Positions 1-44,217 of a stretch of DNA of 64,000 nucleotides are shown one piece after another. The stretch is from positions 91,822,001 to 91,886,000 of the forward strand of contig NC_087439.1 of the NCBI RefSeq assembly GCF_036321535.1, in the 5' to 3' direction. The notes under the pieces are model-generated. The model ran no database searches. It saw nothing but the letters and a program-made list of their open reading frames with translations, and was not told the DNA's origin. The stretch comes from Camelus dromedarius (Eukaryota). How positions within the stretch are numbered: the first letter of the stretch is position 1; the number at the start of each line of letters is the position of its first letter. The position numbers and the translations under genes are program-made.

Positions 1-420
1 ATGGTAGCCGTAGCGGCAGCGGGCTCGGGTGCCACTTACCCGGCAGGAGCCCGCCCGGGCCGAGCGGAAACAGAGCTGATCGAGCGGGAGCCGGGGCCGA
101 AGCCGGGGCGGAGCGGGGCAGGCAGCCGCTCTCTCCGTGCGCCCGTATCCTTCTCTGCCGCCTCCCGGAGCTGCGCAGCCCGCCGGCCCCGAGGGAGGGG
201 GCGCGCCGGCGGCTCCACCCTCCTCTGCCCGCCCCCCGCGCCCCCTCCTTCTTCCTGCCTCCATCCAGGCTACCTGTCAGCTCAGTGGCAGCTCGGGGGC
301 GGGGATGGCGAAGGCGGCTGCGGGAACACGCTCCCGAGGGTCTGACACAGGCTTTGGGCTCGAGGATTCCAGGTTCACCCGTGTCCTGAGAGAAGTGAGG
401 GCGCGCCAGGTACTCCCGGA
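1..420. promoter_or_regulatory. CpG island / TATA-less GC-box promoter of the putative ECEL1 gene
   Basis: Very high GC and CpG density; GC boxes such as GGGGGCGGGG near 295-304 and C-rich tracts at 228-250. Confidence 0.75.
40..190 (-). other. ECEL1: Probable non-coding first exon of ECEL1 (endothelin-converting enzyme-like 1 / DINE); rest of gene lies left of the window; 5' boundary approximate
   Basis: CpG-dense; minus-strand consensus donor CGG|GTAAGTG (exon ends at 40, GT at 39-38); about 30 kb upstream of and divergent from PRSS56, matching the remembered human order ECEL1-PRSS56-CHRND-CHRNG-EIF4E2. No coding sequence visible, so identity rests on synteny. Confidence 0.6.
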
Positions 421-3400
421 AAGGGGTCCCCTCTGATCCAACGCCCCTACTCAGGGATGCCTACCAGCCCTCAGGAAAGGGGCTCAAGCTGAAGATGAGG
501 AGGCTAGTGGGCCATTACAGCCACAGGACTGGAGCATCGCCCAGGCAGGAGTCCCGAAAGGCTGTGGGTGCACTTGAATAGTGCCTGTAACTCCTGGCAC
601 ACCGCCTGCAGCAGAGCAGGCGTCCATAAGGGGGTTTCCTGGTCCTCCCTTTTAGCTCCTGCCCATGTCCAGCCCTCCGCGGGCGCCAGGGGTTTTGGTT
701 CACCCTGCCCCTGATGGAGGAAGAGCCTGAGAGGCTGCTGCAAGAAAGGGCCACAGGGCTGAGACTGAGCGCCTCCCCCAAAACTTGGCTGGCCTGGGTC
801 CCCACTGCTCTGGAAGCCCCTGGGGAAGGAAACGACTGGAGAGAAATGAAAGAGCCCACCCTGCAGGAGCCAGGGAGGGAGGGAGTCCACCTGCTCTGCA
901 CAGCAGCTCCAGCTCTCTAACTGGGTCTTGGGCCTCAGGACCTTGGTATTTGGGCTGGTGGGAGGACAGGTCAGGTAGGGGGGCTAGGAATTATTCATCC
1001 AATCCTTTATCCTGGTTCAACCTCCTTTTTTAATGTGGGACCTCCCTCCCTGGACACAGGGCCTACTTCCCCCTGGCTGACTCACCACTGCACTCAGTTT
1101 CTGGTCCATGTGGGGCACAGGTAACTCAGGGCTTCTTGGATGAATGATACTGTTTCTGGAGTCTCTGCCATCTCCACCCTGCCCTCCCTTTCCTTCTGCT
1201 TCCAGTGTCCCTAGCAGGGGACCCCACAAAGCAGCGGCACTCCCAGGCGTGGTGGTTTCAGCTTGCAGGACTGGCCTAAACAACTAAACAACATTAGAGA
1301 CAGCCCAGGACTGCTATAGAGCCCCATCTGATTAAAACCACAATGAGGCAGTGACTAAACAACTCGATACTCTGTCCCCTCCCTGAGGTTGCTCATTAGT
1401 CCAGAGATTGGCCCCTGGCCTTGAGTGAAGTGGCCACCTCTGTCCCAGTTCTGTCTGTCCCTTGTGTGTCCATCTGTTCACCTCTAAGCCACCTTCTGGA
1501 TATTCTTTGCCTCCACCTCTGACCATCTCACGGTCCTCCTTTGACCCAAGTGTTCTTCTTGGGTCTAATTAATTCTACCCATGGGAGGTGGGATTATGTA
1601 AAATGTGGTGATTCCATAAAGGAGGGGAGGGCAGGGCAGTGGCAAAGTGGCTCTTTGTGCTTTTAATCTGCATTTTTCCCTCAACGTTTTGTCTCCAGGA
1701 GGATAATTTTCCAGTCTTTTCAGGCCCTGATTGGTATCATTTCTCCAGCAATGACAGCTTTTATTTTCCCTGAAATGAATGTCATGAAATTTCCAAGAAA
1801 TATAAAAATGGATATTGTCTCAGGGAGCTGACTCTCTTCTAACAGAAAGGCACAAAGGCAAACCTGCTTCCCCAGGGATGCTGCTGCTCCAGCCACTGGA
1901 GGGTGGGGAGCCAGGCCCTCAGCTCGCCCTCCCCGCCTCCCTCCCAGGTCAGCTGTAGGACCCCCTCCTGGCCATCCCTCTCCCAGAGTCTCAGCTGCCG
2001 TTGATCTGTTCCTGTGCCTCCCCATTCCTGGCCAGGCCATCCTGTCTGCCTGCCTCGCTCCATCTGGCCTCTCTGTACAGCACCTCATCCTCCACACCCA
2101 GCCCCAGAGGCTCCCCCAGGGCTGAGCACAGCAACCAGGGCTCACAGGAGGTGACTGAGGACTGGGCCCATGACCACTCAGTCCCAGTCCCCCCAGCACC
2201 GCCCACCAATAAGGGTGACCATGCCCCGCCTCCTGTGCCCTTCTGTCCCTTCTCAGAAAGGGAAGCTGAGTTGAGGCCTCATCTGGCCTCCAGCTGCCTC
2301 AGTCTTTTTGAGAGTCCTGGGGTGCCCCTCCCATTGTCAAAATAACTCCCTGAGGAGCAAGAGAATGAGAGGACCCAGCCCAGCCCTGAGGAGGTAACTG
2401 GATTCCCATTTTGGGGTGGAGGGGAACAGGGGAGCACTGACAAGAGCTGATTGGTGAGAGAAGGGGGCTGGGGGCAGAGGTGAGGGGACCCTCTACGTCT
2501 TCCCTTCCCAGATCCCATCCCACCCCATGCTGGGTGGGCATCATGGGTCTGGATTCTAGGAAAGGGGCACAGAGCAGCCTCTTCTATGTCCCACTCTATG
2601 GGGACAGCAGTCTCCACACTAATGACTCACGTCTATTAAGCTTCCACCAGATGAGTTGCTAAATGCTTGACTTCAAAGGAGGGCTGCCATCCTGGAGGCA
2701 GCCTGGCCCTGCCTGGAGCCCATCCTGATGAGACTCATTTCTGCACCTATGGGGAAGGACTGGGCCCCATCTGCCTGCTGCTCGAGCCTGAACCCCCTAG
2801 CTCTGCCTCTGATCTGGAGATGACCCCGGCCTCCACCCTGCCTGACTGGCTCCCCCACCCCCACCAACAGTGCTGTGGAATCTTCCCTGCCCAGGAAAAC
2901 ATCCCCCACAACCAGCTTCCTGGCCTCCGGCTGGCCTCCCAGGACTCATCCCATCTATTATTCACAGCACAAAATGGATTTTTAATTTGAGAAATGAAAC
3001 GACTCTCCCAAGTGGCTGGGGTGGCAGGGAGGGGGCGGGGAGAGGCTGGAGCCTTGGGGGGGGGGGGGCAACACGGTGCTGACTCAGATTCCTGTTGGAA
3101 AGCTGTGTGTCCACAGCAGCTCTGGGGGATCCCTAGGGCCTACGTACCCCTACACCCAGCCTATTCCTCCAGTCTGTTGCTATCACCAGATGGGGTGAAA
3201 GGTGACCATCACTCCTGCTGAGCTCCGAGTGGGGTCTGCTCCTGGCCAGGCAGGGCGCTAGGGACTCTGCACTCTGCTTGCTGCCAGATCCCTGGGCTTG
3301 GAGGGCAGCCCTTGGGCTCCCTGGCCTGGTCCAACTCCTCCCCAAACTTCCTGGCCATCACTGGGCTGAGCTCAAGATTCTCCCCAGAGCAGACCACCAG

Positions 3401-3986
3401 CTGATCTCCTCTGCTAGGTCCCAACACCTTGCTATGCCCACTCCAACCTGGACAGCTACCCCAGGCCCCACACTGGCCTCCAGCTCCCAGAGCCCCTCCT
3501 CACCCCCAGGATAGAACTTACACCTAAGTGGCCCAAGGCCGTGATCTCTTCCTGACCTCTGCTCTGCTCTGTCTGTCTCCTGATCCCCTACCTCTCTTCC
3601 CTGGTCACTTTGTTATATTTTCATTTCCCAGAACATAGCAGGCTCTCCCTCACCTCAGGGCCTTAGCACTTCTCCCAGAACCTCTTCCATTGGCCAAGTG
3701 CCACTCATCCTTCTTGAGGTGCCAGCTTTCCTCTCTGGTCCTGTGCTAGTTCCGTGGACCTGGGCTCGCTCTTCCTGGGCCCCAGCTATGCTTCCTGCTT
3801 AGTAGTTGTATAGTTTACTCAACTGTGTAGCCCAGAGCAGGGCAGAGACAGTGCATCTGATAGACATGGAACGTTCTCACACAGCTGTGTTCGGCCTATG
3901 AAACGGCCATTTTGAAGTATTCCCCAGGAAGGCGATTTCCATTCCCACTGTGCAGAGACTCTTCTTTGGGGTCATCTACCAACCTC

Positions 3987-4132
3987 NNNNNNNNNNNNNN
4001 NNNNNNNNNNNNNNNNNNNNNNNNNNNNNNNNNNNNNNNNNNNNNNNNNNNNNNNNNNNNNNNNNNNNNNNNNNNNNNNNNNNNNNNNNNNNNNNNNNNN
4101 NNNNNNNNNNNNNNNNNNNNNNNNNNNNNNNN
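3987..4132. other. Assembly gap (N run)
   Basis: 146 N. Confidence 1.
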
Positions 4133-4257
4133 ACTTAACCTAAGCCTGTTGGGGGCCTGAAAGCCTTCCCTCACACACATCCCCTTCCCAGTCTTTCCCA
4201 AGGTAAGGTAAGCTCTTGACTACCTCAGTATGAGCATCTAGGCACCTGCCAACGTTG

Positions 4258-4297
4258 CTTTCTTTTTCTTTTTCTTTTTCTTTTTCTTTTTCTTTTT
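4258..4297. repeat. (TCTTTT)n simple repeat
   Basis: Direct reading. Confidence 0.9.
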
Positions 4298-5229
4298 AAT
4301 AACTGAGACACCAGGAGATATGTGATTTGGTGCCCTGTACCCACAGGCCTCCACCAGCCTCTCCCACACAGAAGTCCCCATTGTCTCCATCCCCAACCCA
4401 GGGACACAGGTGGTCTTGCCCATACCTGTCTGGTCTCCAAAGCCCAGGCCTTGTCTGGTGTCCTGCCTCTCACTCTCCCTCTCAGCCCACCCCGCCCGCC
4501 CTCCCTGCTCCAGCTCCACTCCATCCCCTGGAGGCTCTGCCCAGGTGGTGGCACAGCCCCTCAATTCTGACCCCAGGTTCCATCTGTACCTGCGGCTCCA
4601 GAGGCTCTCCACATTCCAAATCCAGCTCATCTTTCATTTCTCCTCCTCTTCCTCACTCCCTACTTCAGGCCCAAGTCCCAGCATCCCACTCTGGAAAGGC
4701 TTCTCTCTCCCCTCCTCCTTCCCAGCCCATCCTGTGCCAGTTCTGGCCCTTAGTTCTCCATTCCTGACTGGAGGAAGGGGGTGTCTTCCCTTTGCCCACC
4801 CAGACACTGCTGCTGCCCCCTGCCCGTTCCCGCCCCACACCCTCCGGGACCCTCAGCATGGTTTCTGAGGCTTCCTTGGTCTGGCTCCAGCCCCCTTTCT
4901 AGCCTCCTCATTCAAGGTTCCCTAATTCCCACCTCCTGAAGGGGATTGTACCCCCACCTCGGTGCCTTTGTTATACGTCCCCTCTGCCAGAGTGCCTTTA
5001 CCCCAGCCCTCCTGTCCCCCTTTAGGTCTGTCTCAAGCTTCCAGGATCCCTGGGAGTCCCCACAGCCCCGCGGGTCCTCACCTGAGGGAGGCAGCTGAGA
5101 CACATGCCCTGTGTGCCCAGCCTGGAGCCTGGTCCCTGGCCTGGGCTGACCGGAGCAGACCTCAGCTGGGACCTGGATGCCCTCTAACCAACAGCTATGG
5201 TGGGCCCTACTCCCCCCCCCGCCCCCCGT

Positions 5230-5450
5230 AACAGATGTAGAGCATCTCCTATGCGCATGCTCTGTCCAAGCTCTCTGCGGGCTTCACCACACTGAGTCTC
5301 ACAGTGAACCTGCCAGGGGCCCCTGTCACTGGCCCCAATTTACACAGAGGAAACTAAGGCCCAGAGAAGGAAAGAAAGTAGCCCAGGCTCACCCAGCTCA
5401 AAAGCACTGAAGCTGAAATTTGAACCCATGTCTACAGCATTCACGCAGAC
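5230..5450 (-). mobile_element. MIR SINE
   Basis: Core GAGGAAACTAAGGCCCAGAGAAGG...AAATTTGAACCCA. Confidence 0.7.
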
Positions 5451-6875
5451 TCCGAGCTGGGAGCCAAAAGGACAGCTCTGTAGGGAGCGGGCAGGGCACT
5501 CAGAACCCACGTGAAGGCAACATGGGGCCAGGGGCCAGGCTGTGAGCTCCATCCAGAACTGCGTTGGGGGTAAGGAATCTGGGGAGCCAGGCGGGTGCCA
5601 AGGCTGGCTTTGCCCAGAGACTTCAGGAGGGATCTCAGGGCCTGACGCTTAGCCTCGGCCTCCCTTCCAGATACCCCACCTCCAAGGGCCCTTCCTGGAC
5701 CTCCCTGATTGAAGCGCCCAGTCATTTTTTGTCTGTTGTCCTGGGTGCATGTATAGTATTTGACATTATCTTGTGACCTGGCATTTTCGTGGTCTCTCTT
5801 CCTCAGCTCTGTTGAGACCCCAGTTTTTCCAACCTCATCCCTCCTGCCCTGCCTGAGTGGGAAGGCCTTGGCCACAGGCCATTGGGGGTGTTGGCCAGGT
5901 TGACAGAGCCAAAGCAGGGTGGTGACCATGGGGTCAGGGAGGAGAGGGAGGAGAGACTCTGAGGTCTGAGGCCTCCAGCTCTGACAGGCCCCTTAGGCTT
6001 TTATTTGAATGAACAGGACACAACAGAGGCAAGTAAGGCTGTAAGGGCTGGGGGAGGGGAATAGGAAAGTGAACCCCAGAGCCTGGAGCACCCCTTCCTG
6101 TCAGGGTACCCACAGCTCGTTGCTTGTGATAGCAAGGAGGAGGGCTTGGAATGGGCAGAGCCCAGAGAAGCCAGCAGGCCCTGCAGAGCCCCTTCCTTGC
6201 CTCACAGGGTCACTGGGTTGTGGTCCCCTCCCCCAGCACTCCATCATCATTTCAAGTGATCAGAGCTGAAGGGGATCATTAGCTAATTAAAGCCAAGGCC
6301 ACTAATTGTCCCTTGTAGGAGAGAAAGCAGGACTGCAGAGGGAAGGAGACAGCAGGCTCAGAGGGACTCAGAGGGGCCGGGCATAGGGCCCCTGCCCTGG
6401 GCAGGGCCTCCATCTAGGCTGTGTGTATAGGAGAGGGCTGTGTCCTTGGTGTGGAACTGTGGGATGGGGGCAAGAGCCCGGACTCAGAGCTCCCATCCAA
6501 CAACTGTGCGTCTTCGTGAACATCCACACCCGCTTCTGCCTACCGCCCGCCCGCCTTGGATTGTGAGCTGGGGTGGTGTGTGGTGAGGGACTCCCACAGA
6601 CATCCTCTGGATGCTGTGATAGGTCAGATTTGAGGACAGGGAGCAGGATGCTAGGGTCCCAGGCCCCAGGCTGGCCCCGAGGAGGAAGTCTGCCTGCCAA
6701 ATAAGTGTCTGCCCTCCCCTCCACCCCTTACAGCCTGAGGCAGGTGAACTATCAGCAGTGGTGCACATCCACATGTCCGAGAGGGCCAGCCACACCTGGT
6801 GCCGCCCTTAGCCTGGCACCGATTCCCGCCTAGCGGGATGTCCCAGGGCCTTCTGTCAGAACTACCAAATAGGGT

Positions 6876-7493
6876 TGTTGGTTTCCTATTCCTGTGTAAT
6901 GAATTACCACAAACATAGCAACTTAAAACTAGACAAATTTATTGTCTCTGTAGGTCAGAAGTCCAGGCGCAGCATGGCTGGATTCTCTGCTCAGGGCCTC
7001 ACTGGGCTGAAGTCCACATCCATTGGGGCTGGGTTCTCCCTTAGGGCTCAGGCTCCTCTTCCAAGCTCAGGGGTTGTGGCAGAATTCAGTTCCTTCGGTT
7101 GGAGAATCAAGGTGTCCCATCTTTTCTGGCTGCCAACCAGGGGCTGCTCTCAGCTTCCAGAGGCCACTGCATCTCTTGCCTTGAGGCCCCTCCAACTCCA
7201 AAGTCACCAATGGAAAATCTCCCCCACATTGAATTTTTGTCATGCTTAGATCTGTCTTCCTCTCATCCACCAGCCAGAGAAAGGCTGCTTTTTCTCTGCT
7301 TTTAAAGGCCCCGTATAATTAGGTCTGATAATCTCCCCATCTTAAGGTCAACTTGTTTGGAATCTTAATTACATCTGCAAAATTCCTTCGTAACAGTACC
7401 TAGATTTATGTTTGGTTGAATAGTAGGGAGAAATATGTCTGTACATCAGGGTCCAGGAATCGTGGGGGGCATCTTGGGATTCTGCCTGTCACA
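6876..7493 (-). mobile_element. MaLR solo LTR, MLT1E-like
   Basis: Minus strand begins TGTGACAGGCAGAATCCCAAGATG and ends ...GGAAACCAACA; typical MLT1 internal motifs. Confidence 0.75.
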
Positions 7494-7559
7494 GAAGTTA
7501 TGAGGGAAAGAGCTAAGGCCTGGTAAGAATACTAGCAGCTGACTTCTGGGCCAGGTCTT

Positions 7560-7700
7560 GGGCTTCAAGTTCTAAGTTATCTCCTTTAATCCTCAGCACA
7601 ATTCTAGGAGCAGGTGCTACTAGTGTCACCATTTTATAGAGGCAGAAACTGAGGCCGTGAGAGGTTAAGTGATTTTCACAGTCACACAGCTCGAGAACGG
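7560..7700 (-). mobile_element. MIR SINE
   Basis: CATTTTATAGAGGCAGAAACTGAGGCCGTGAGAGGTTAAGTGA. Confidence 0.7.
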
Positions 7701-8845
7701 TCAAGCTGGGATACTAGGGTAATACAACGTCTAAGCCAGCTCTTACTGTGTTCTCTTAGGAAAGTTGTATAACCTCTCTGGGCCTCTGTGGAAAAAGGGA
7801 AATGAAGTCCATTTTCCATGGAGAGGTAGGCCAGCCTCCAGGGCCCACACTGCCGGGGATGGGTGGGGTCTGGCCTGCGCCATCCTCATCTCAGTGGTCC
7901 TGAGGGGTGCTTGATTGGCACTTATGGCACTCAGTGAGATGGAGTGGGACTGGGGTCCCTGATGTCAGCAGTCCAACTGCAGCCATTCTGGCTTCTTCAA
8001 CCCAAAGACAGAATGTTCCCAGGCACTGAGGCTAGGAGGCTTACGGTTACCACGGGGCCCCTGACACAGACATAGGAACCCCAGGATTAATGGCCAGGAA
8101 ATTGCTGATCACAAGCAGGCTAGTCTCCTTAGAGAACCAAATAGGGGCTTTCAGACCTTTGCCCAAGGGTGGGCATGTGTGTCTGGAGCGGGTGCCTCGC
8201 CCACATCCAGGCTCTGGCTCTCTTGACTCAGCTGGACAGGCTACTGCTCTGGTGAGAGAGGGACCCAGAGAGGTGGCAGTGGCCGCTGCCTGCTCCCCCT
8301 CCCCATAAGAAAGACTGTCAGTCAACCCCAGCAGGCCCCCACACAATCAGCCTCCTCCCACCCACCCTCTTCGCCCCTATGCTTGAGCAGCCTCCCTCAG
8401 TAACGGGGCTTAATCATAACATGCATTAGCTAGGGCCTGCTGCCTGCAATTACTGCTTCAATCAGCCACCCACCACCCTCCGCCCCCAGCCTCAGGCCAC
8501 CTGTGGGGACATCCTGCCCCACCCTCCCTGGCCCCCTCCCCAAATGCAGGGCAGGTGCCCCAGGCTCTGCAGTTGGAAAGAGAAGTGACCCCTGGCAGTG
8601 AGGGGGCTGGGGGTGGGGGTGGCCAGCGGCCAGAGGACAGAGAGCTACAGCTCAGGGTCACAGGCAATTATTTTAAAAGCCTGTTGGACAAAAAAATAAA
8701 TAAATAAATAAAAGCCTGTTGGAAACTGCGCTGCCTTCCCAGCACAGCGGCGGGCTCATCCTGAGGGTTGCACTGCCCCAGGTTGCTGACACGCTTGCAT
8801 ACACACATGGGTGTTTACATGTGCTAGTTCCACCCCCCATGCAAG

Positions 8846-8885
8846 CATACACACACAAACACACACACATACACACACACACACA
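8846..8885. repeat. Interrupted (CA)n microsatellite
   Basis: Direct reading. Confidence 0.9.
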
Positions 8886-10199
8886 AGGATGGGTGTGTGC
8901 CAGGGCACATGGCAGTGGATGCATAGCCCTAGGGGGCCCACATGGACCCCAAAGAGTTGGGTACTGGCTGCCTCCAAGGTATGGACGCACAAGGAGGTTC
9001 ACCTGAGTGACCCTTTGCACCCCTGCCCCCTCCAAGCACAGACTGCCTCCTGTCCTTTGGCTCCCCTAGCCCAGCCATGAGGCACAGGGGGCCTGAGCTG
9101 AATTGGATGACTGCCTGTTCCATCCAGCCTCAGAGCTTGAGTGGGGGCTGGAGAAAAGGGGAGAAGGCGGACCTGGCAGGGGGAGGGGTGGGGGAGGGGA
9201 CTGCTGTTGTGCTGTGATTCTTTCTAATTGCTGTTTTGCTGAGAGGTAATTAAAATCCCTTTTTATTTCACACGTCAGAGCCCTCACCAGCCTGTGGAGA
9301 GGGCACAGGGGGAGGCAGAGAGGTGGGGGCAACCGAAGGCTGGCTGCCTGGCACAGTGAGGGGACAGAGAGGTGGGTCTTCTGAGCCCAGACTGCCAGCC
9401 CAGTCTGCCTGCTAGGAGGACCAGTGACAGCAGTCCCCAGCCCAGCCCCTGACCCAGCCCATGAGTGCCCAGGGGCAGGCCCTGGCCAGGATGTGTGCAG
9501 CCCACCAACGCCAACAAAAGCCACACCTCCCTATGCCTCCTAGATGCCAGGCATTGTGCTGAGCTCCCAACTCATAGGATTGTTACCAAAATAACTACCA
9601 CCGGGTAGATACCATTATTATCCCATGTCAGGACAGTGATAAAACTGAGACTCAGAGATTAAGAAACAGCTGAGATCACCCCCCTCTAACCACAGTGGTA
9701 GAATTGGATTTGAAGAGGTCTGATGCCAAACTCCGAAGTACTATATCAGCCTGACCACTTCAAGCCACATAACTGTCTGCTTCGGCAGAGCCTGCCACAG
9801 TTCCACAGCCCTACCCTGACCCTCCTCAAAGCCTAGAGGGAAGGGCCACAGCCTTCGGACCCCTGCCCAAGGCCCACACATGGTATGGTCACCTGCTGAC
9901 AAGTCACTTGGGACAAAACTGGAGCTTGCCCTGCCCATTGAGGCCTGTGGACACTCCCTGAAGTCTGGGTGGGGCCAAAGGGCCATGGCCAGATCAGAGC
10001 CTGGACTACTACCCAACCAGTGTCAGGCTGGAAAGAAGCAAGGCCCCCTGCCTTCTCCTAGGCTGTCTGGGGGAGGTGGGTTAATAGCAACTGGGCCTCA
10101 CTGGGTGGGGCAGGTGCAAGGTCACTGACCAGCACCTCTCTGTTTCATATGCCACTCCCTTTGCCTTTTCTCTCCCTTCATGTGGGCCAGGAGTTGTGT

Positions 10200-10405
10200 C
10201 ACCCATCCTTTTCATCATCACCATCTCCGCCACCATCAGCACCACTGTCACCATCCATTATCTTTGCCATCAGCATCATCACCGTCATATTTATTTTCAC
10301 CAAAATCATCACCATCATCATCATCATTACAGTTATGAGCATCATCACCACCACTTTCTCAATTATCATCATCATTTCCATCAAAATGACCACCACCATC
10401 ATTGC
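10200..10405. repeat. Degenerate (CAT/CAC)n trinucleotide low-complexity tract
   Basis: Direct reading; runs straight into a MIR. Confidence 0.9.
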
Positions 10406-10640
10406 CACCAGGGCTTACACTGTACCAGGCACTGTTCAAACAATGGGTATTTTATCTCACTGAATCCTCATAATATCTAAGAAGTAGGTGCCAGTATTAT
10501 CCTCTCATTTTACATTTAAGTAGGGGGAAACCAAGGCTTACAATGAAGGAGCTTGCCCAAAGTCACAGAGCCAGGAAGTAGCAGAGGAAGGACTTGAACC
10601 AAAACTGCTTGATATTAGAGCCCAAAGGCATAACCACTAC
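10405..10640 (-). mobile_element. MIR SINE
   Basis: GGGGAAACCAAGGCTTACAATGAAGGAGCTTGCCCAAAGTCACAGAGC. Confidence 0.7.
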
Positions 10641-11629
10641 ACATCACTGCCTCTAAGTTGAAGAACCTGGAGAATCAAGCCAGAGGATGAGAAAAAAGTT
10701 CAGCTTCCCAGGGACCCAGAAGCAGCTAGCCACCCCATTGCCCTGCTGGGCCTTGGCAGCAATCCTACCCCAAGCCTCCTTCTGGCTCAACTTTGCCAGG
10801 GCTGGAGATAGGCGAATGGTCAAAAGGAGCCATGTGACTCAAGAAGCTGGATTCTAGTTTTGTCCCTAGCCGGACAGAGTCCGGACAGCCCCATCTCCCT
10901 TGGCATCCCCTCATTTTCCAGGCCATGTCTCTGGGGGCTTATTCACCTCTTGTGCATGCTGGCCAAGCTGAGGATGGACGGTCAGGCCTGGTGGGGGAAG
11001 GGCACGGAAGTGGCAGCCCAGGGAGAGGGGCAGAGCAGGCAGGAGCCCAGCGGGGCCTTGGGTGATATCTCATGACACAGGACTAGATTGTGGCCAAGAG
11101 AGAAAGCTCCCTCCCAGCCTGCCAACCTTCTCTCTTCAACCCAGGGCATTGGCCTTGTTGTGTTGATCACTCAAGGGGGCCAAGAGGGCAGTCACTCAGG
11201 TCACTTAGAGACCAGCCAGGCACCTGCCGCCTTGCCTGAGGTCTGATGGGAGTGAGAGACAGGCTGGAGACGGCAGAGGAAGGACTGAGAGCAGGTGCCC
11301 CACTCTCTCAAGGGCAGGCATGGTGACCCTGTGTCCTTGGAGCTCAATGCACCGCCATTTATGTGTAATCAGGTCAAGGAAGCAAGACAGGAAGGGAAGA
11401 GAGAAGGATTGCTGAGCAGTGCGGAGGTGGCCAGGGACCCCCCGGGGTCTGCAGGAGTGAGGGAGGGACAGTCTCAGCTACATGCAGCAGCCGGGCCAGA
11501 GAGCAGGGAGGGGTTTTATCCATCATGTGTCCCCAGTGCACAGTGCTGGCACTAGAAGGTACTTAATATTTATAGAATGAAAGAATGGATGAAAACAATT
11601 TCAGGATTAGAACTGTCCCTCAATAGGAC

Positions 11630-11830
11630 ACGACATCCAGTGAGGTAGCTTCCATCACTGGAGCAAAAGGATTAAAAATCTCAGGCTCTAGAGTCAGATG
11701 AATAAGGATTAAATCCTAGCCCCACCATTTCCCAGCTGTGATCAGGTCACTTGGCCTCTTTAAGCCTCAACTTTCTCATCCAAAAATGGGGACAATAATG
11801 TCTATCTGATATCATGTACAGGTGGGGAAT
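11630..11830 (+). mobile_element. MIR SINE
   Basis: GCCTCAACTTTCTCATCCAAAAATGGGGACAATAATG. Confidence 0.7.
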
Positions 11831-12323
11831 CCTTATATAAGCACCTCTAGGAGGGAAGGCTGGGGCCAGCTAGAAGCCCACAGCCTCCTTCCCACATCAT
11901 CCTCCAGGCACCTAGGGACCTCCTCCTACACCTCATTTCTCTCCACTGAGGAGCAGCTAGGCATGGCTGAGCCCAACAAGATGAACTCCCTGGCCGGCTG
12001 CCCCAGTACAGAGAGAAACCCCCATGGGGAAGGGCCAGGAGGTAGGATGGTGGGCAGAGACTTCAGGAGCCAGGCTCCTGAGGGGTTTAGGGGTTGCTGG
12101 GACACCTGGGAAGGGGGCTCCATGGAGGCCAGTGGAATCTCAGACCAGGGAGTGAGTCTTCTCCCTGACACCCACTGAGCTGCCTTGCTTGAGTCCTCAG
12201 TTTCCTCATCTGTAACATGGGAATAATTACAGGCTCAAAATCTCAGGACAGTTGCTGGGTTTATAAGAGGTGATCCTGTGAAAGCCCCCCAGCAGCATGT
12301 CTGGCAAACACTGGGGCCCCAGC

Positions 12324-12336
12324 CATACACACACAT

Positions 12337-12367
<31 letters not shown>

Positions 12368-12385
12368 CACACAGACACACACACA
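12324..12385. repeat. Interrupted (CA)n microsatellite
   Basis: Direct reading. Confidence 0.9.
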
Positions 12386-13556
12386 CCCTCGCAGCTGTCC
12401 ATTCCCTGGGCCTTGCTGGCTCCTCGGGAGGTGGGGGGAGACCTGGAGCCCCACCCTCCCCCGACCCCCATCCCCTCATCCCACACATCTGTGGCAGTGA
12501 TGCACACTGCTCTTCCTTTCTGTCAATGTTCTCTGCCGGTTAATGGGCCAATTTTTTAGCATTACGGAGATTTGGCCAATTTGGCTGCCCTGACAGAAAG
12601 GCTCAGTGAACAGTTGCCTAGGGGGTGGGGGTGGGGTGTGGAAGCAAGGGTGGGAGAGGAGGAGGATGAGAAGGAGAAGGGAGTGGAGATCTGTACCTCC
12701 TCTCAGGCTGCTCCCAGCCAGGCATGTCTAAATTCTGGGCAAGGGAGGTGGAGTCAGTGGAGAGATTACAGAGATAATTAGCCCCACTTATGCCCCCCAC
12801 CTACCCCCTCCCACCGTGCACTGGCCCTGTGCTGAGCACTCTGCATATATTTTCTCTTTTAATCCTCTAATAACCCTCTAAGGCCAGTTCTATTATTTGC
12901 TCCATCCTTCCTGGTGTGGAACTCAGGGACAGGAGACTCGGAGCTGGCCCAAGGTCACAGAGCCAGGAAGTGATGGAGCTGGAATGTGAGCTAAGGCTGA
13001 AAGCCAGCCCTTTGAACCATTCCTGAGCTCAGTTTCTAACTAAAGGCTGAGAATTAGACCAGGACCCCTCCACCCATTCACCCACCTACCCCCACCTATC
13101 CAACTCCCTCTCCCCGCAGCCAGGCACACACCACACACAATCTCCAAAAGCCTCAGCCTCTCCAGGCTGCTGGGGATCCCTATCAGGCACTCAGAGATCC
13201 CCATGTCCTTCCCCTCCTGGCTGAGGGTGCCTCAGCTTGAAGCCCCCAGACCCAGCATCTCTGCAGAGAGGGCCTGAGCACCACAACTGTCAGGCATGAG
13301 CAGGGGTTCCAGCCCAGAACTGTACCCTCCCTTCCTTCCCAGGCTGTGGGCTAGGGTCCCCATACCAGCTGTGGCTTCTGGAGCACCTCCTGGGGTCAGT
13401 GCCAGGCTGCAAGTGGGCATCAGCTGTGCCCACCGCACAATCTGGGCCCTTCTGGGGGCAAGGAGGCAAATCTGCCAGGGAGGTTGGGAGGGGAGGGGAG
13501 GAAAGGGGAGGGAAGGAAAAGGGAGGGGAGTGCCTCTGGGCTGGAGGAGGGGGCTG

Positions 13557-13688
13557 NNNNNNNNNNNNNNNNNNNNNNNNNNNNNNNNNNNNNNNNNNNN
13601 NNNNNNNNNNNNNNNNNNNNNNNNNNNNNNNNNNNNNNNNNNNNNNNNNNNNNNNNNNNNNNNNNNNNNNNNNNNNNNNNNNNNNNNN
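13557..13688. other. Assembly gap (N run)
   Basis: 132 N. Confidence 1.
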
Positions 13689-43728: not shown

Positions 43729-44217
43729 TGTGGCAGCCCACCTCCAAAACGGCCCCAGTGATCCCTACCGCCTGGTATTCATATCCTTGTGTAGTGCCTC
43801 CCACATGGTACCAGGACTACTCTGTGTGACCAACAGAATGAGGCAGAAGTGGTTGTGTGAAACTTCCAAGTCTAGGTCATGAGAGACATTGTAGCCCTCC
43901 CCCCACCCCTGCTGTTACTCCCTCATTCACTCTCAGTTGGCTGACAGAGGAAGCTGGTTGGCACANNNNNNNNNNNNNNNNNNNNNNNNNNNNNNNNNNN
44001 NNNNNNNNNNNNNNNNNNNNNNNNNNNNNNNNNNNNNNNNNNNNNNNNNNNNNNNNNNNNNNNNNNNNNNNNNNNNNNNNNNNNNNNNNNNNNNNNNNNN
44101 NTGCTAGAACCACCCAGCTAAACTGCTCCTGGATTTCTGACCCTCAGAAACTATGTGAGATAATAAACGTTTCTTGTTTTAAGAGACAAAGTTTCGGGTA
44201 GTTAGTTACACTAGCAG
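43729..44217 (+). mobile_element. MaLR solo LTR, MLT1F-like, interrupted by an assembly gap
   Basis: 5' TGTGGCAG...; 3' CTAGAACCACCCAGCTAAACTGCTCC...GAGATAATAAACGTTTCTTGTTTTAAG. Confidence 0.8.
43966..44101. other. Assembly gap (N run)
   Basis: 136 N. Confidence 1.

Follow-up and report, generated by a model that had tools for sequence, protein, structure and literature searches.

A conserved homeodomain-site block upstream of ECEL1 as a candidate distal neuronal enhancer

The ECEL1 flank and its motifs

The window, by which we mean the whole 64-kb stretch of the Camelus dromedarius genome that was analysed, contains no ECEL1 coding sequence. The genes identified within it are a trypsin-family gene at 31.7-33.6 kb, taken as PRSS56 by position, followed by CHRND (37.5-39.3 kb) and CHRNG (47.9-50.4 kb), all three on the plus strand; the Cys-loop receptor exons of the latter two have as their best matches the solved delta and gamma subunits of the acetylcholine receptor, respectively. 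The order of the mammalian locus is ECEL1 (on the minus strand), PRSS56, CHRND and CHRNG, and we take this order to apply to the window as well.

At the left edge, positions 1-250 have a GC content of 0.78 and a CpG observed/expected ratio of 0.88. A 15.8-kb Logan contig from another mammal (L005) is, in reversed orientation, colinear with window positions 4-12197 at 72-82% identity. It carries the ECEL1 start and the first coding exon (a Peptidase_M13_N match) about 1.05 kb past window position 1, and its promoter CpG island (11.8-12.6 kb on the contig) falls, when projected onto the window, at roughly +330 to -470. Given the synteny and the presence of the first ECEL1 coding exon on this contig, the promoter CpG island of ECEL1 lies at the left edge of the window, with the gene transcribed leftwards. 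With the island placed there, the element analysed here (6277-6289) lies ~6.1-6.7 kb upstream of the likely ECEL1 start site; its distance from the ECEL1 start codon is roughly 7.3 kb. The original prediction, made from the sequence alone, had put the element 6 kb upstream of ECEL1, and this placement holds on the combined evidence of synteny, the CpG island and colinearity with the contig that bears the ECEL1 exon, the gene itself being outside the window.

The features discussed below are as follows.

1..345, minus strand: edge of the ECEL1 promoter CpG island (from composition and colinearity with L005)
6252..6258, plus strand: TCAAGTG, NKX-type heptamer (read in the sequence)
6262..6361, no strand assigned: conserved non-coding block (from the six-lineage alignment and identity to L005)
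6277..6289, plus strand: exact match to the Isl1-Lhx3 consensus CATTA-N3-AATTA, CATTAGCTAATTA (read in the sequence and found by pattern scan)
6277..6282, plus strand: CATTAG, ISL1-type half-site, with A6278 derived (from alignments of six lineages)
6283..6293, plus strand: CTAATTAAAGC, LHX3-type TAATTA site (from comparison with tested sites and the alignment)
6302..6308, plus strand: CTAATTG, second homeodomain-type site, not conserved (from the sequence and the six-lineage alignment)

The original prediction was built on three motifs, the NKX-type heptamer (6252-6258), the consensus match (6277-6289) and CTAATTG (6302-6308), all of which were confirmed by direct reading of the sequence. Its claim that they lie in unique sequence fits with the finding that 6262-6450 is not duplicated anywhere else in the window. 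Positions 6277-6289 combine CATTA-N3-AATTA with the CATTAG half for ISL1 and accordingly have the sequence of an HxRE of the long, SELEX type. When both strands were scanned, CATTANNNAATTA was the single match in the 64-kb window, against an expectation of 0.03, and at least one CATTA-N3-AATTA match appeared in 3 of 100 dinucleotide-preserving shuffles of the window; the significance of the 13-mer is post hoc, as many other motifs could have caught the reader's eye. The core, 6277-6308, is 38% GC and its flanks are 58-62% GC. The window has 10 clusters of at least four TAAT/ATTA cores within 40 bp, so the homeodomain-core cluster as such is ordinary, and the exact 13-mer is the only unusual part.

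Other assignments and matches were weighed and set aside. The orientation of ATTA-GC-TAAT is wrong for a paired-type P2/P3 dimer site, and a Onecut site at GATCGTT is a poor match. A 21-mer scan of metagenome contigs for host DNA yielded no matches, and the four matches from a gapped-pattern scan of metagenome and genome contigs were attributed to chance, being located in bacterial or low-complexity DNA with dissimilar flanks. Elsewhere, the window contains three runs of N, 132-146 bases long (3987-4132, 13557-13688 and 43966-44101), and (CA)n/(TG)n microsatellites at 8800-8960 and 12290-12400, with CVCVCV and HTHTHT runs in the ORF translations.

Orthologous sequences and conservation of the block

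Orthologous sequences were recovered by way of a spurious minus-strand ORF at 6368-6724, next to the element, which was searched as a protein, singly and then as a profile. The protein matches were traced to three Logan contigs (L005, L006 and L015) and to three host contigs in ENA metagenome assemblies (L014, L016 and L017), all of which are colinear with the window around the element. Over 6262-6890, these contigs are 79-84% identical to the window and 76-86% identical to one another, except for L014 and L016, which share 93%. The comparison comprises the window and five other mammalian lineages, human and mouse not being among them. Alignments and queries start at 6262 or end at 6221, so that 6262 is the left edge of the analysis and not necessarily that of the block. 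Conservation of the flanking ORF as a protein-coding sequence was rejected, given that frames and stops differ between species. Within this spurious minus-strand ORF, a peak at 6560-6650 (87-90% across lineages) reads LKSDLSxHPEDVCGSPSP; it is not coding. A search with protein P0002 returned no match but the protein itself.

Several other sequences do not extend the comparison. The rodent loci L007 (Dipodomys), L012 (Castor) and L013 (Thomomys) were rejected as orthologous because they have no alignment with the window. Partial ECEL1-like models (Peptidase_M13_N, 312-484 aa) are located between alkaline-phosphatase genes in Dipodomys, Castor and Thomomys and resemble duplicated pieces of ECEL1 within the ALP cluster; ECEL1P pseudogenes occur in the human ALP cluster. 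In the locus of the bat Saccopteryx bilineata (L008), alignment with the window ends at 5443, so that the element falls outside the fetched flank. The sequence further upstream (1-3183 of L008) fails to align and is for the greater part AT-rich, at 27-47% GC, an observation suggestive of a lineage-specific insertion that displaced the orthologous block. Logan contigs L009-L011 end at about window position 3900, short of the element. Sequencing runs containing the stretch come from this species and a close relative only. RNA-labelled runs were rejected as evidence of an exon or an enhancer RNA, being host-contaminated metagenomes in which intergenic DNA is also present.

Conservation in the block exceeds that of the surrounding DNA in several lineages, as is typical of a conserved non-coding element. 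Within the 630-bp alignment, 6262-6311 shows 90-91% identity across the five other lineages, compared to 75% overall. Mismatching cells account for 17 of the 200 in 6262-6311 (8.5%) versus 26.7% in the rest of the alignment, counted over four independent lineages, and the binomial probability of so few mismatches is ~8e-11, a value uncorrected for rate variation and for the choice of window. In the comparison with L005 alone, 6262-6336 is 96% identical, where the mean over ~5.8 kb of aligned sequence is 78% (SD 12%), and the block ranks within the top six of the 229 overlapping 50-bp windows that make up the identity profile (top 3%). This conservation is moderate, not extreme, and the block is not ultraconserved. 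A MIR-like SINE core at 7637-7686 (…TTTTATAGAGGCAGAAACTGAGGC…GAGAGGTTAAGTGATTT…GTCACACAGC; the repeat spans 7630-7700) is also 96% identical to L005, so local identity alone is no proof of function.

Only three invariant runs of at least eight bases occur in the 630 bp, namely, 6263-6271, 6284-6293 and 6333-6342. Across the six lineages, the sequence follows the near-invariant pattern GAGCTGAAG.GG.TC.TTAG.TAATTAAAGC, and TAATTAAAGC itself (6284-6293) is fully invariant, as would be expected of an HxRE-short or LHX3 site under constraint. The ISL1 half does not share this invariance: base 6278 is G in all five of the other lineages, which thus have CGTTAG where the window has CATTAG. CTAATTG at 6302-6308, proposed originally as a companion site, is kept in L005 only and is replaced in the others by CCAATTG, CTAACTG, CTCATTT or CTAACCG, so that this part of the proposal falls away.

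The consensus CATTA-N3-AATTA was not found in any of the fetched ECEL1 loci of other species, that is, L005 (12 kb upstream and the gene start), the bat locus, three whole-gene Logan contigs and the short orthologous contigs; conservation at the ECEL1 locus thus does not extend to the exact hexamer. The two half-sites at their spacing are not preserved together in the orthologues from the five other lineages, a set without mouse and human. The original prediction had itself named absence of the site from orthologues as counting against it, and this is, in spirit, what these five lineages (again, without mouse and human) display.

CG-to-CA is the commonest substitution in mammals. A maximum-likelihood tree gives the window a branch (0.097) shorter than the L006 and L015 branches and does not set it apart as the outgroup; with midpoint rooting, it groups with L006. 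Because the base is G in five of five other lineages, the change is of the commonest kind and the window is not an outgroup, A6278 is derived, having been produced by a CpG-to-CpA transition in the window's lineage. Every sampled word of the stretch is present in all 16 DNA runs from this species and the close relative, which implies that the A allele is widespread. Judged by the alignments, the ISL1 half-site is a lineage-specific gain on an older LHX3-type site, not an ancestral feature, and constraint falls on a single LHX3-type TAATTA site and not on a bipartite Isl1-Lhx3 site. The predicted hexamer element thus stands as an exact match in a conserved non-coding block near a motor-neuron gene, but its ISL1 half is not conserved, reading CGTTAG in every other lineage compared.

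ECEL1 expression and characterized LIM-homeodomain sites

Loss of ECEL1 leads to distal arthrogryposis type 5D and to motor-nerve branching defects. The gene is expressed predominantly in motor neurons (PMC5683451), in agreement with the expression there on which the original prediction relied, and by gene score it marks abducens motor neurons, which are Lhx3-positive, as well as facial motor neurons, which are Phox2-positive and Lhx3-negative (PMC11436875, supplement). In the literature searched, we found no paper linking ECEL1 with Isl1, Lhx3 or Lhx8 binding or with a distal enhancer, and none that treats ECEL1 alongside Lhx8 or cholinergic interneurons.

The motor-neuron complex has the consensus CATTAXXXAATTA, and CATTAG is the ISL1 site obtained by SELEX (PMC7797366), so the consensus used in the original prediction is correct. 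The SELEX motif of Isl1-Lhx8 is 15 nt long (PMC3998908). The M100 site of Hb9 (Mnx1), quoted in PMC7797366 from Lee et al. 2008 as CATTAGCCAATTA, is identical to the window element in 12 of 13 bases, the two being one spacer base apart. Common to both are the CATTAG ISL1 half, the 3-bp spacing and the AATTA LHX3 half, and each is distal to a motor-neuron gene. Unlike in M100, the third spacer base in the window is T, which produces a full palindromic TAATTA, a type of site that prefers LHX3 alone in vitro. Also unlike M100, the CATTAG half of the window is lineage-specific, and the window element is a candidate identified by sequence.

The alpha-GSU (Cga) pituitary glycoprotein basal element, a site for LHX3 and LHX2, is ACTTAGCTAATTAAATGTG (PMC7797366). 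The LHX3 homeodomain alone binds this TAATTA site with a Kd of 9 nM and M100 in the micromolar range, whereas the tethered ISL1-LHX3 homeodomain pair binds M100 at 24 nM and alpha-GSU at 4 uM in vitro (PMC7797366). Window positions 6279-6291, TTAGCTAATTAAA, match the alpha-GSU LHX3 site in 13 of 13 bases, and the ancestral form of the element, CGTTAGCTAATTAAAG, resembles the alpha-GSU site ACTTAGCTAATTAAAT, neither having an ATTA core in the left half. Since the tethered pair is weak on the TAATTA site of alpha-GSU, the TAATTA half in the window may favour LHX3 alone over the hexamer. The alpha-GSU site belongs to a pituitary promoter, whereas the window element is located 6 kb upstream of a neuronal gene, and pituitary activity is not expected for ECEL1.

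Validated HxRE-short motifs are CTAATTAAA (Lhx3-Peak-A), which is needed for motor-neuron activity, and TTTTAATTAGCT; the Lhx3-only complex also binds sites of this kind, as does Hb9 (PMC5394944). Window positions 6283-6291 are identical to the Lhx3-Peak-A motif CTAATTAAA in 9 of 9 bases and hence have the HxRE-short sequence, and the longer segment AGCTAATTAAA matches the Isl1-Peak site Hx-S1, AGCTAATTAAAA, in 11 of 12 bases. It is this HxRE-short-like part of the window site that the six lineages share without change. The HxRE-short motifs lie under ChIP peaks and were mutated in chick neural tube, whereas the window site is a sequence match within a conserved block. As HxRE-short sites under Isl1-Lhx3 peaks are functional in vivo, the motor-neuron complex could use the site in all compared species, and its use may have been strengthened in this species.

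The sole transcriptional control of this gene described in the searched literature involves the same locus, namely, the proximal DINE/ECEL1 promoter, where ATF3, c-Jun and STAT3 are recruited by Sp1 after nerve injury (Kiryu-Seo 2008, as summarized in PMC3277281). As described in that summary, this control is proximal, injury-induced and without homeodomain input, whereas the window element lies distally and would bear on expression in development or by cell type.

Possible roles of the element

We tentatively favour, with somewhat less than even confidence, the reading of the element as a candidate homeodomain-dependent distal neuronal enhancer module of ECEL1, of the LIM-homeodomain class. 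The stretch would form the core of a non-coding element that is conserved and lies ~6.1-6.7 kb upstream of the ECEL1 transcription start, and the constrained part of this element would be a single TAATTA-type homeodomain site, (C/T)TAATTAAAGC, with the same sequence as in characterized LHX3 sites. Several conserved blocks with homeodomain sites would lie upstream of ECEL1, the element among them, and the exact hexamer would have been completed in this lineage by a CpG-to-CpA transition on the older LHX3-type site. The block would thus be an enhancer, would act on ECEL1 and would be used by homeodomain proteins of which the LIM class is our working choice. This specificity is an assumption, because very many homeodomain proteins bind TAATTA, and ECEL1 is assumed to be the target from proximity, the gene in the PRSS56 position being 25 kb away.

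As the comparison illustrates, an exact consensus is a weak guide: the eye-catching half is young and unconstrained, and it is the plain TAATTA half that is constrained. Apart from the injury-responsive proximal promoter, cell-type control of ECEL1 is undescribed in the searched literature, and so is the element itself, which makes it a fresh candidate for an HxRE-like member. With its conserved LHX3-type site, the element would offer a small, concrete target 6 kb upstream of the gene and a place to seek non-coding variants in unsolved cases.

A competing explanation, unlikely in our view, is that there is no regulatory function at all: a chance 13-mer would have been completed by neutral CpG decay, and the conservation around it would reflect local rate variation. 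By our own estimate from base composition, CATTA-N3-AATTA occurs on the order of 10^4 times per mammalian genome, with few of these sites expected to be bound, and here the motif was picked post hoc from a window with 10 homeodomain-core clusters of like density and a MIR-like repeat equally identical to L005. Chance and rate variation sit less easily with a mismatch rate three-fold below that of the flanks in four or five independent lineages, with an AT-rich 10-mer that stays invariant within 57-62% GC sequence, and with the adjoining conserved homeodomain blocks upstream of a neuron-specific gene.

We also consider it unlikely that the conserved module is used by other TAATTA-binding homeodomain proteins or serves another gene (for example, PRSS56), with the new CATTAG being neutral. 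The candidates would include Phox2a/b with Isl1 (in branchiomotor neurons), Hb9, Hox, Lhx2/9, Dlx and POU-homeodomain proteins, but nothing singles out any of them. The generic TAATTA core alone is invariant, and binding of HxRE-short sites by the Lhx3-only complex and Hb9 (PMC5394944) and the marker score of ECEL1 in Phox2-positive facial motor neurons are consistent with other users, the conserved GC-rich runs at 6263-6271 and 6333-6342 pointing to additional factors. The flanks of the site, however, closely match LHX3-validated sites (AGCTAATTAAA), and as to the target, the ECEL1 promoter is nearest by far (~6 kb versus ~25 kb).

Improbable, given the alignments, is the idea in its original form, namely, a conserved Isl1-Lhx3/Isl1-Lhx8 hexamer with constrained 3-bp spacing that puts ECEL1 in the cholinergic programme, in motor neurons and forebrain, across mammals. 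An exact CATTA-N3-AATTA that is one base from the Hb9 M100 site and sits inside a conserved block near a motor-neuron gene speaks for this idea. Yet CGTTAG takes the place of the ISL1 half in five of five lineages, the fetched ECEL1 loci of other species have no exact consensus, and the second site is not conserved. As ECEL1 also marks Lhx3-negative facial motor neurons, Isl1-Lhx3 cannot be its sole input, and for the forebrain part, the searched literature holds no paper on ECEL1 with Lhx8 or cholinergic interneurons.

Very improbable is a functional gain in which the CpG-to-CpA change beside an ancient LHX3-only (tetramer/PGBE-type) site made a full Isl1-Lhx3 hexamer, converting or strengthening a motor-neuron enhancer of ECEL1; if true, this would be a natural cis-regulatory gain via CpG decay that changed which LIM-homeodomain complex reads the element.

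Two further blocks upstream of ECEL1 are closely similar to L005. Conservation in the upstream region is highest at 9195-9310 (~115 bp, 98-100% identity), which contains CTAATTG (9224-9230), GTAATTAAAA (with TAATTA at 9247-9252) and ACGTCA, a CRE/ATF-type half-site (9272-9277). The latter is of interest in view of the ATF3- and c-Jun-driven expression of ECEL1 that follows nerve injury, and 9195-9310 may be a stronger enhancer candidate than the element at 6277-6289. The second homeodomain-type block, 8395-8475, is identical to L005 in 78 of 81 bases and contains TTAATCATAA, CATTAGCTAG (with CATTAG at 8424), GCAATTAC (8447) and a Pbx-like TCAATCA.
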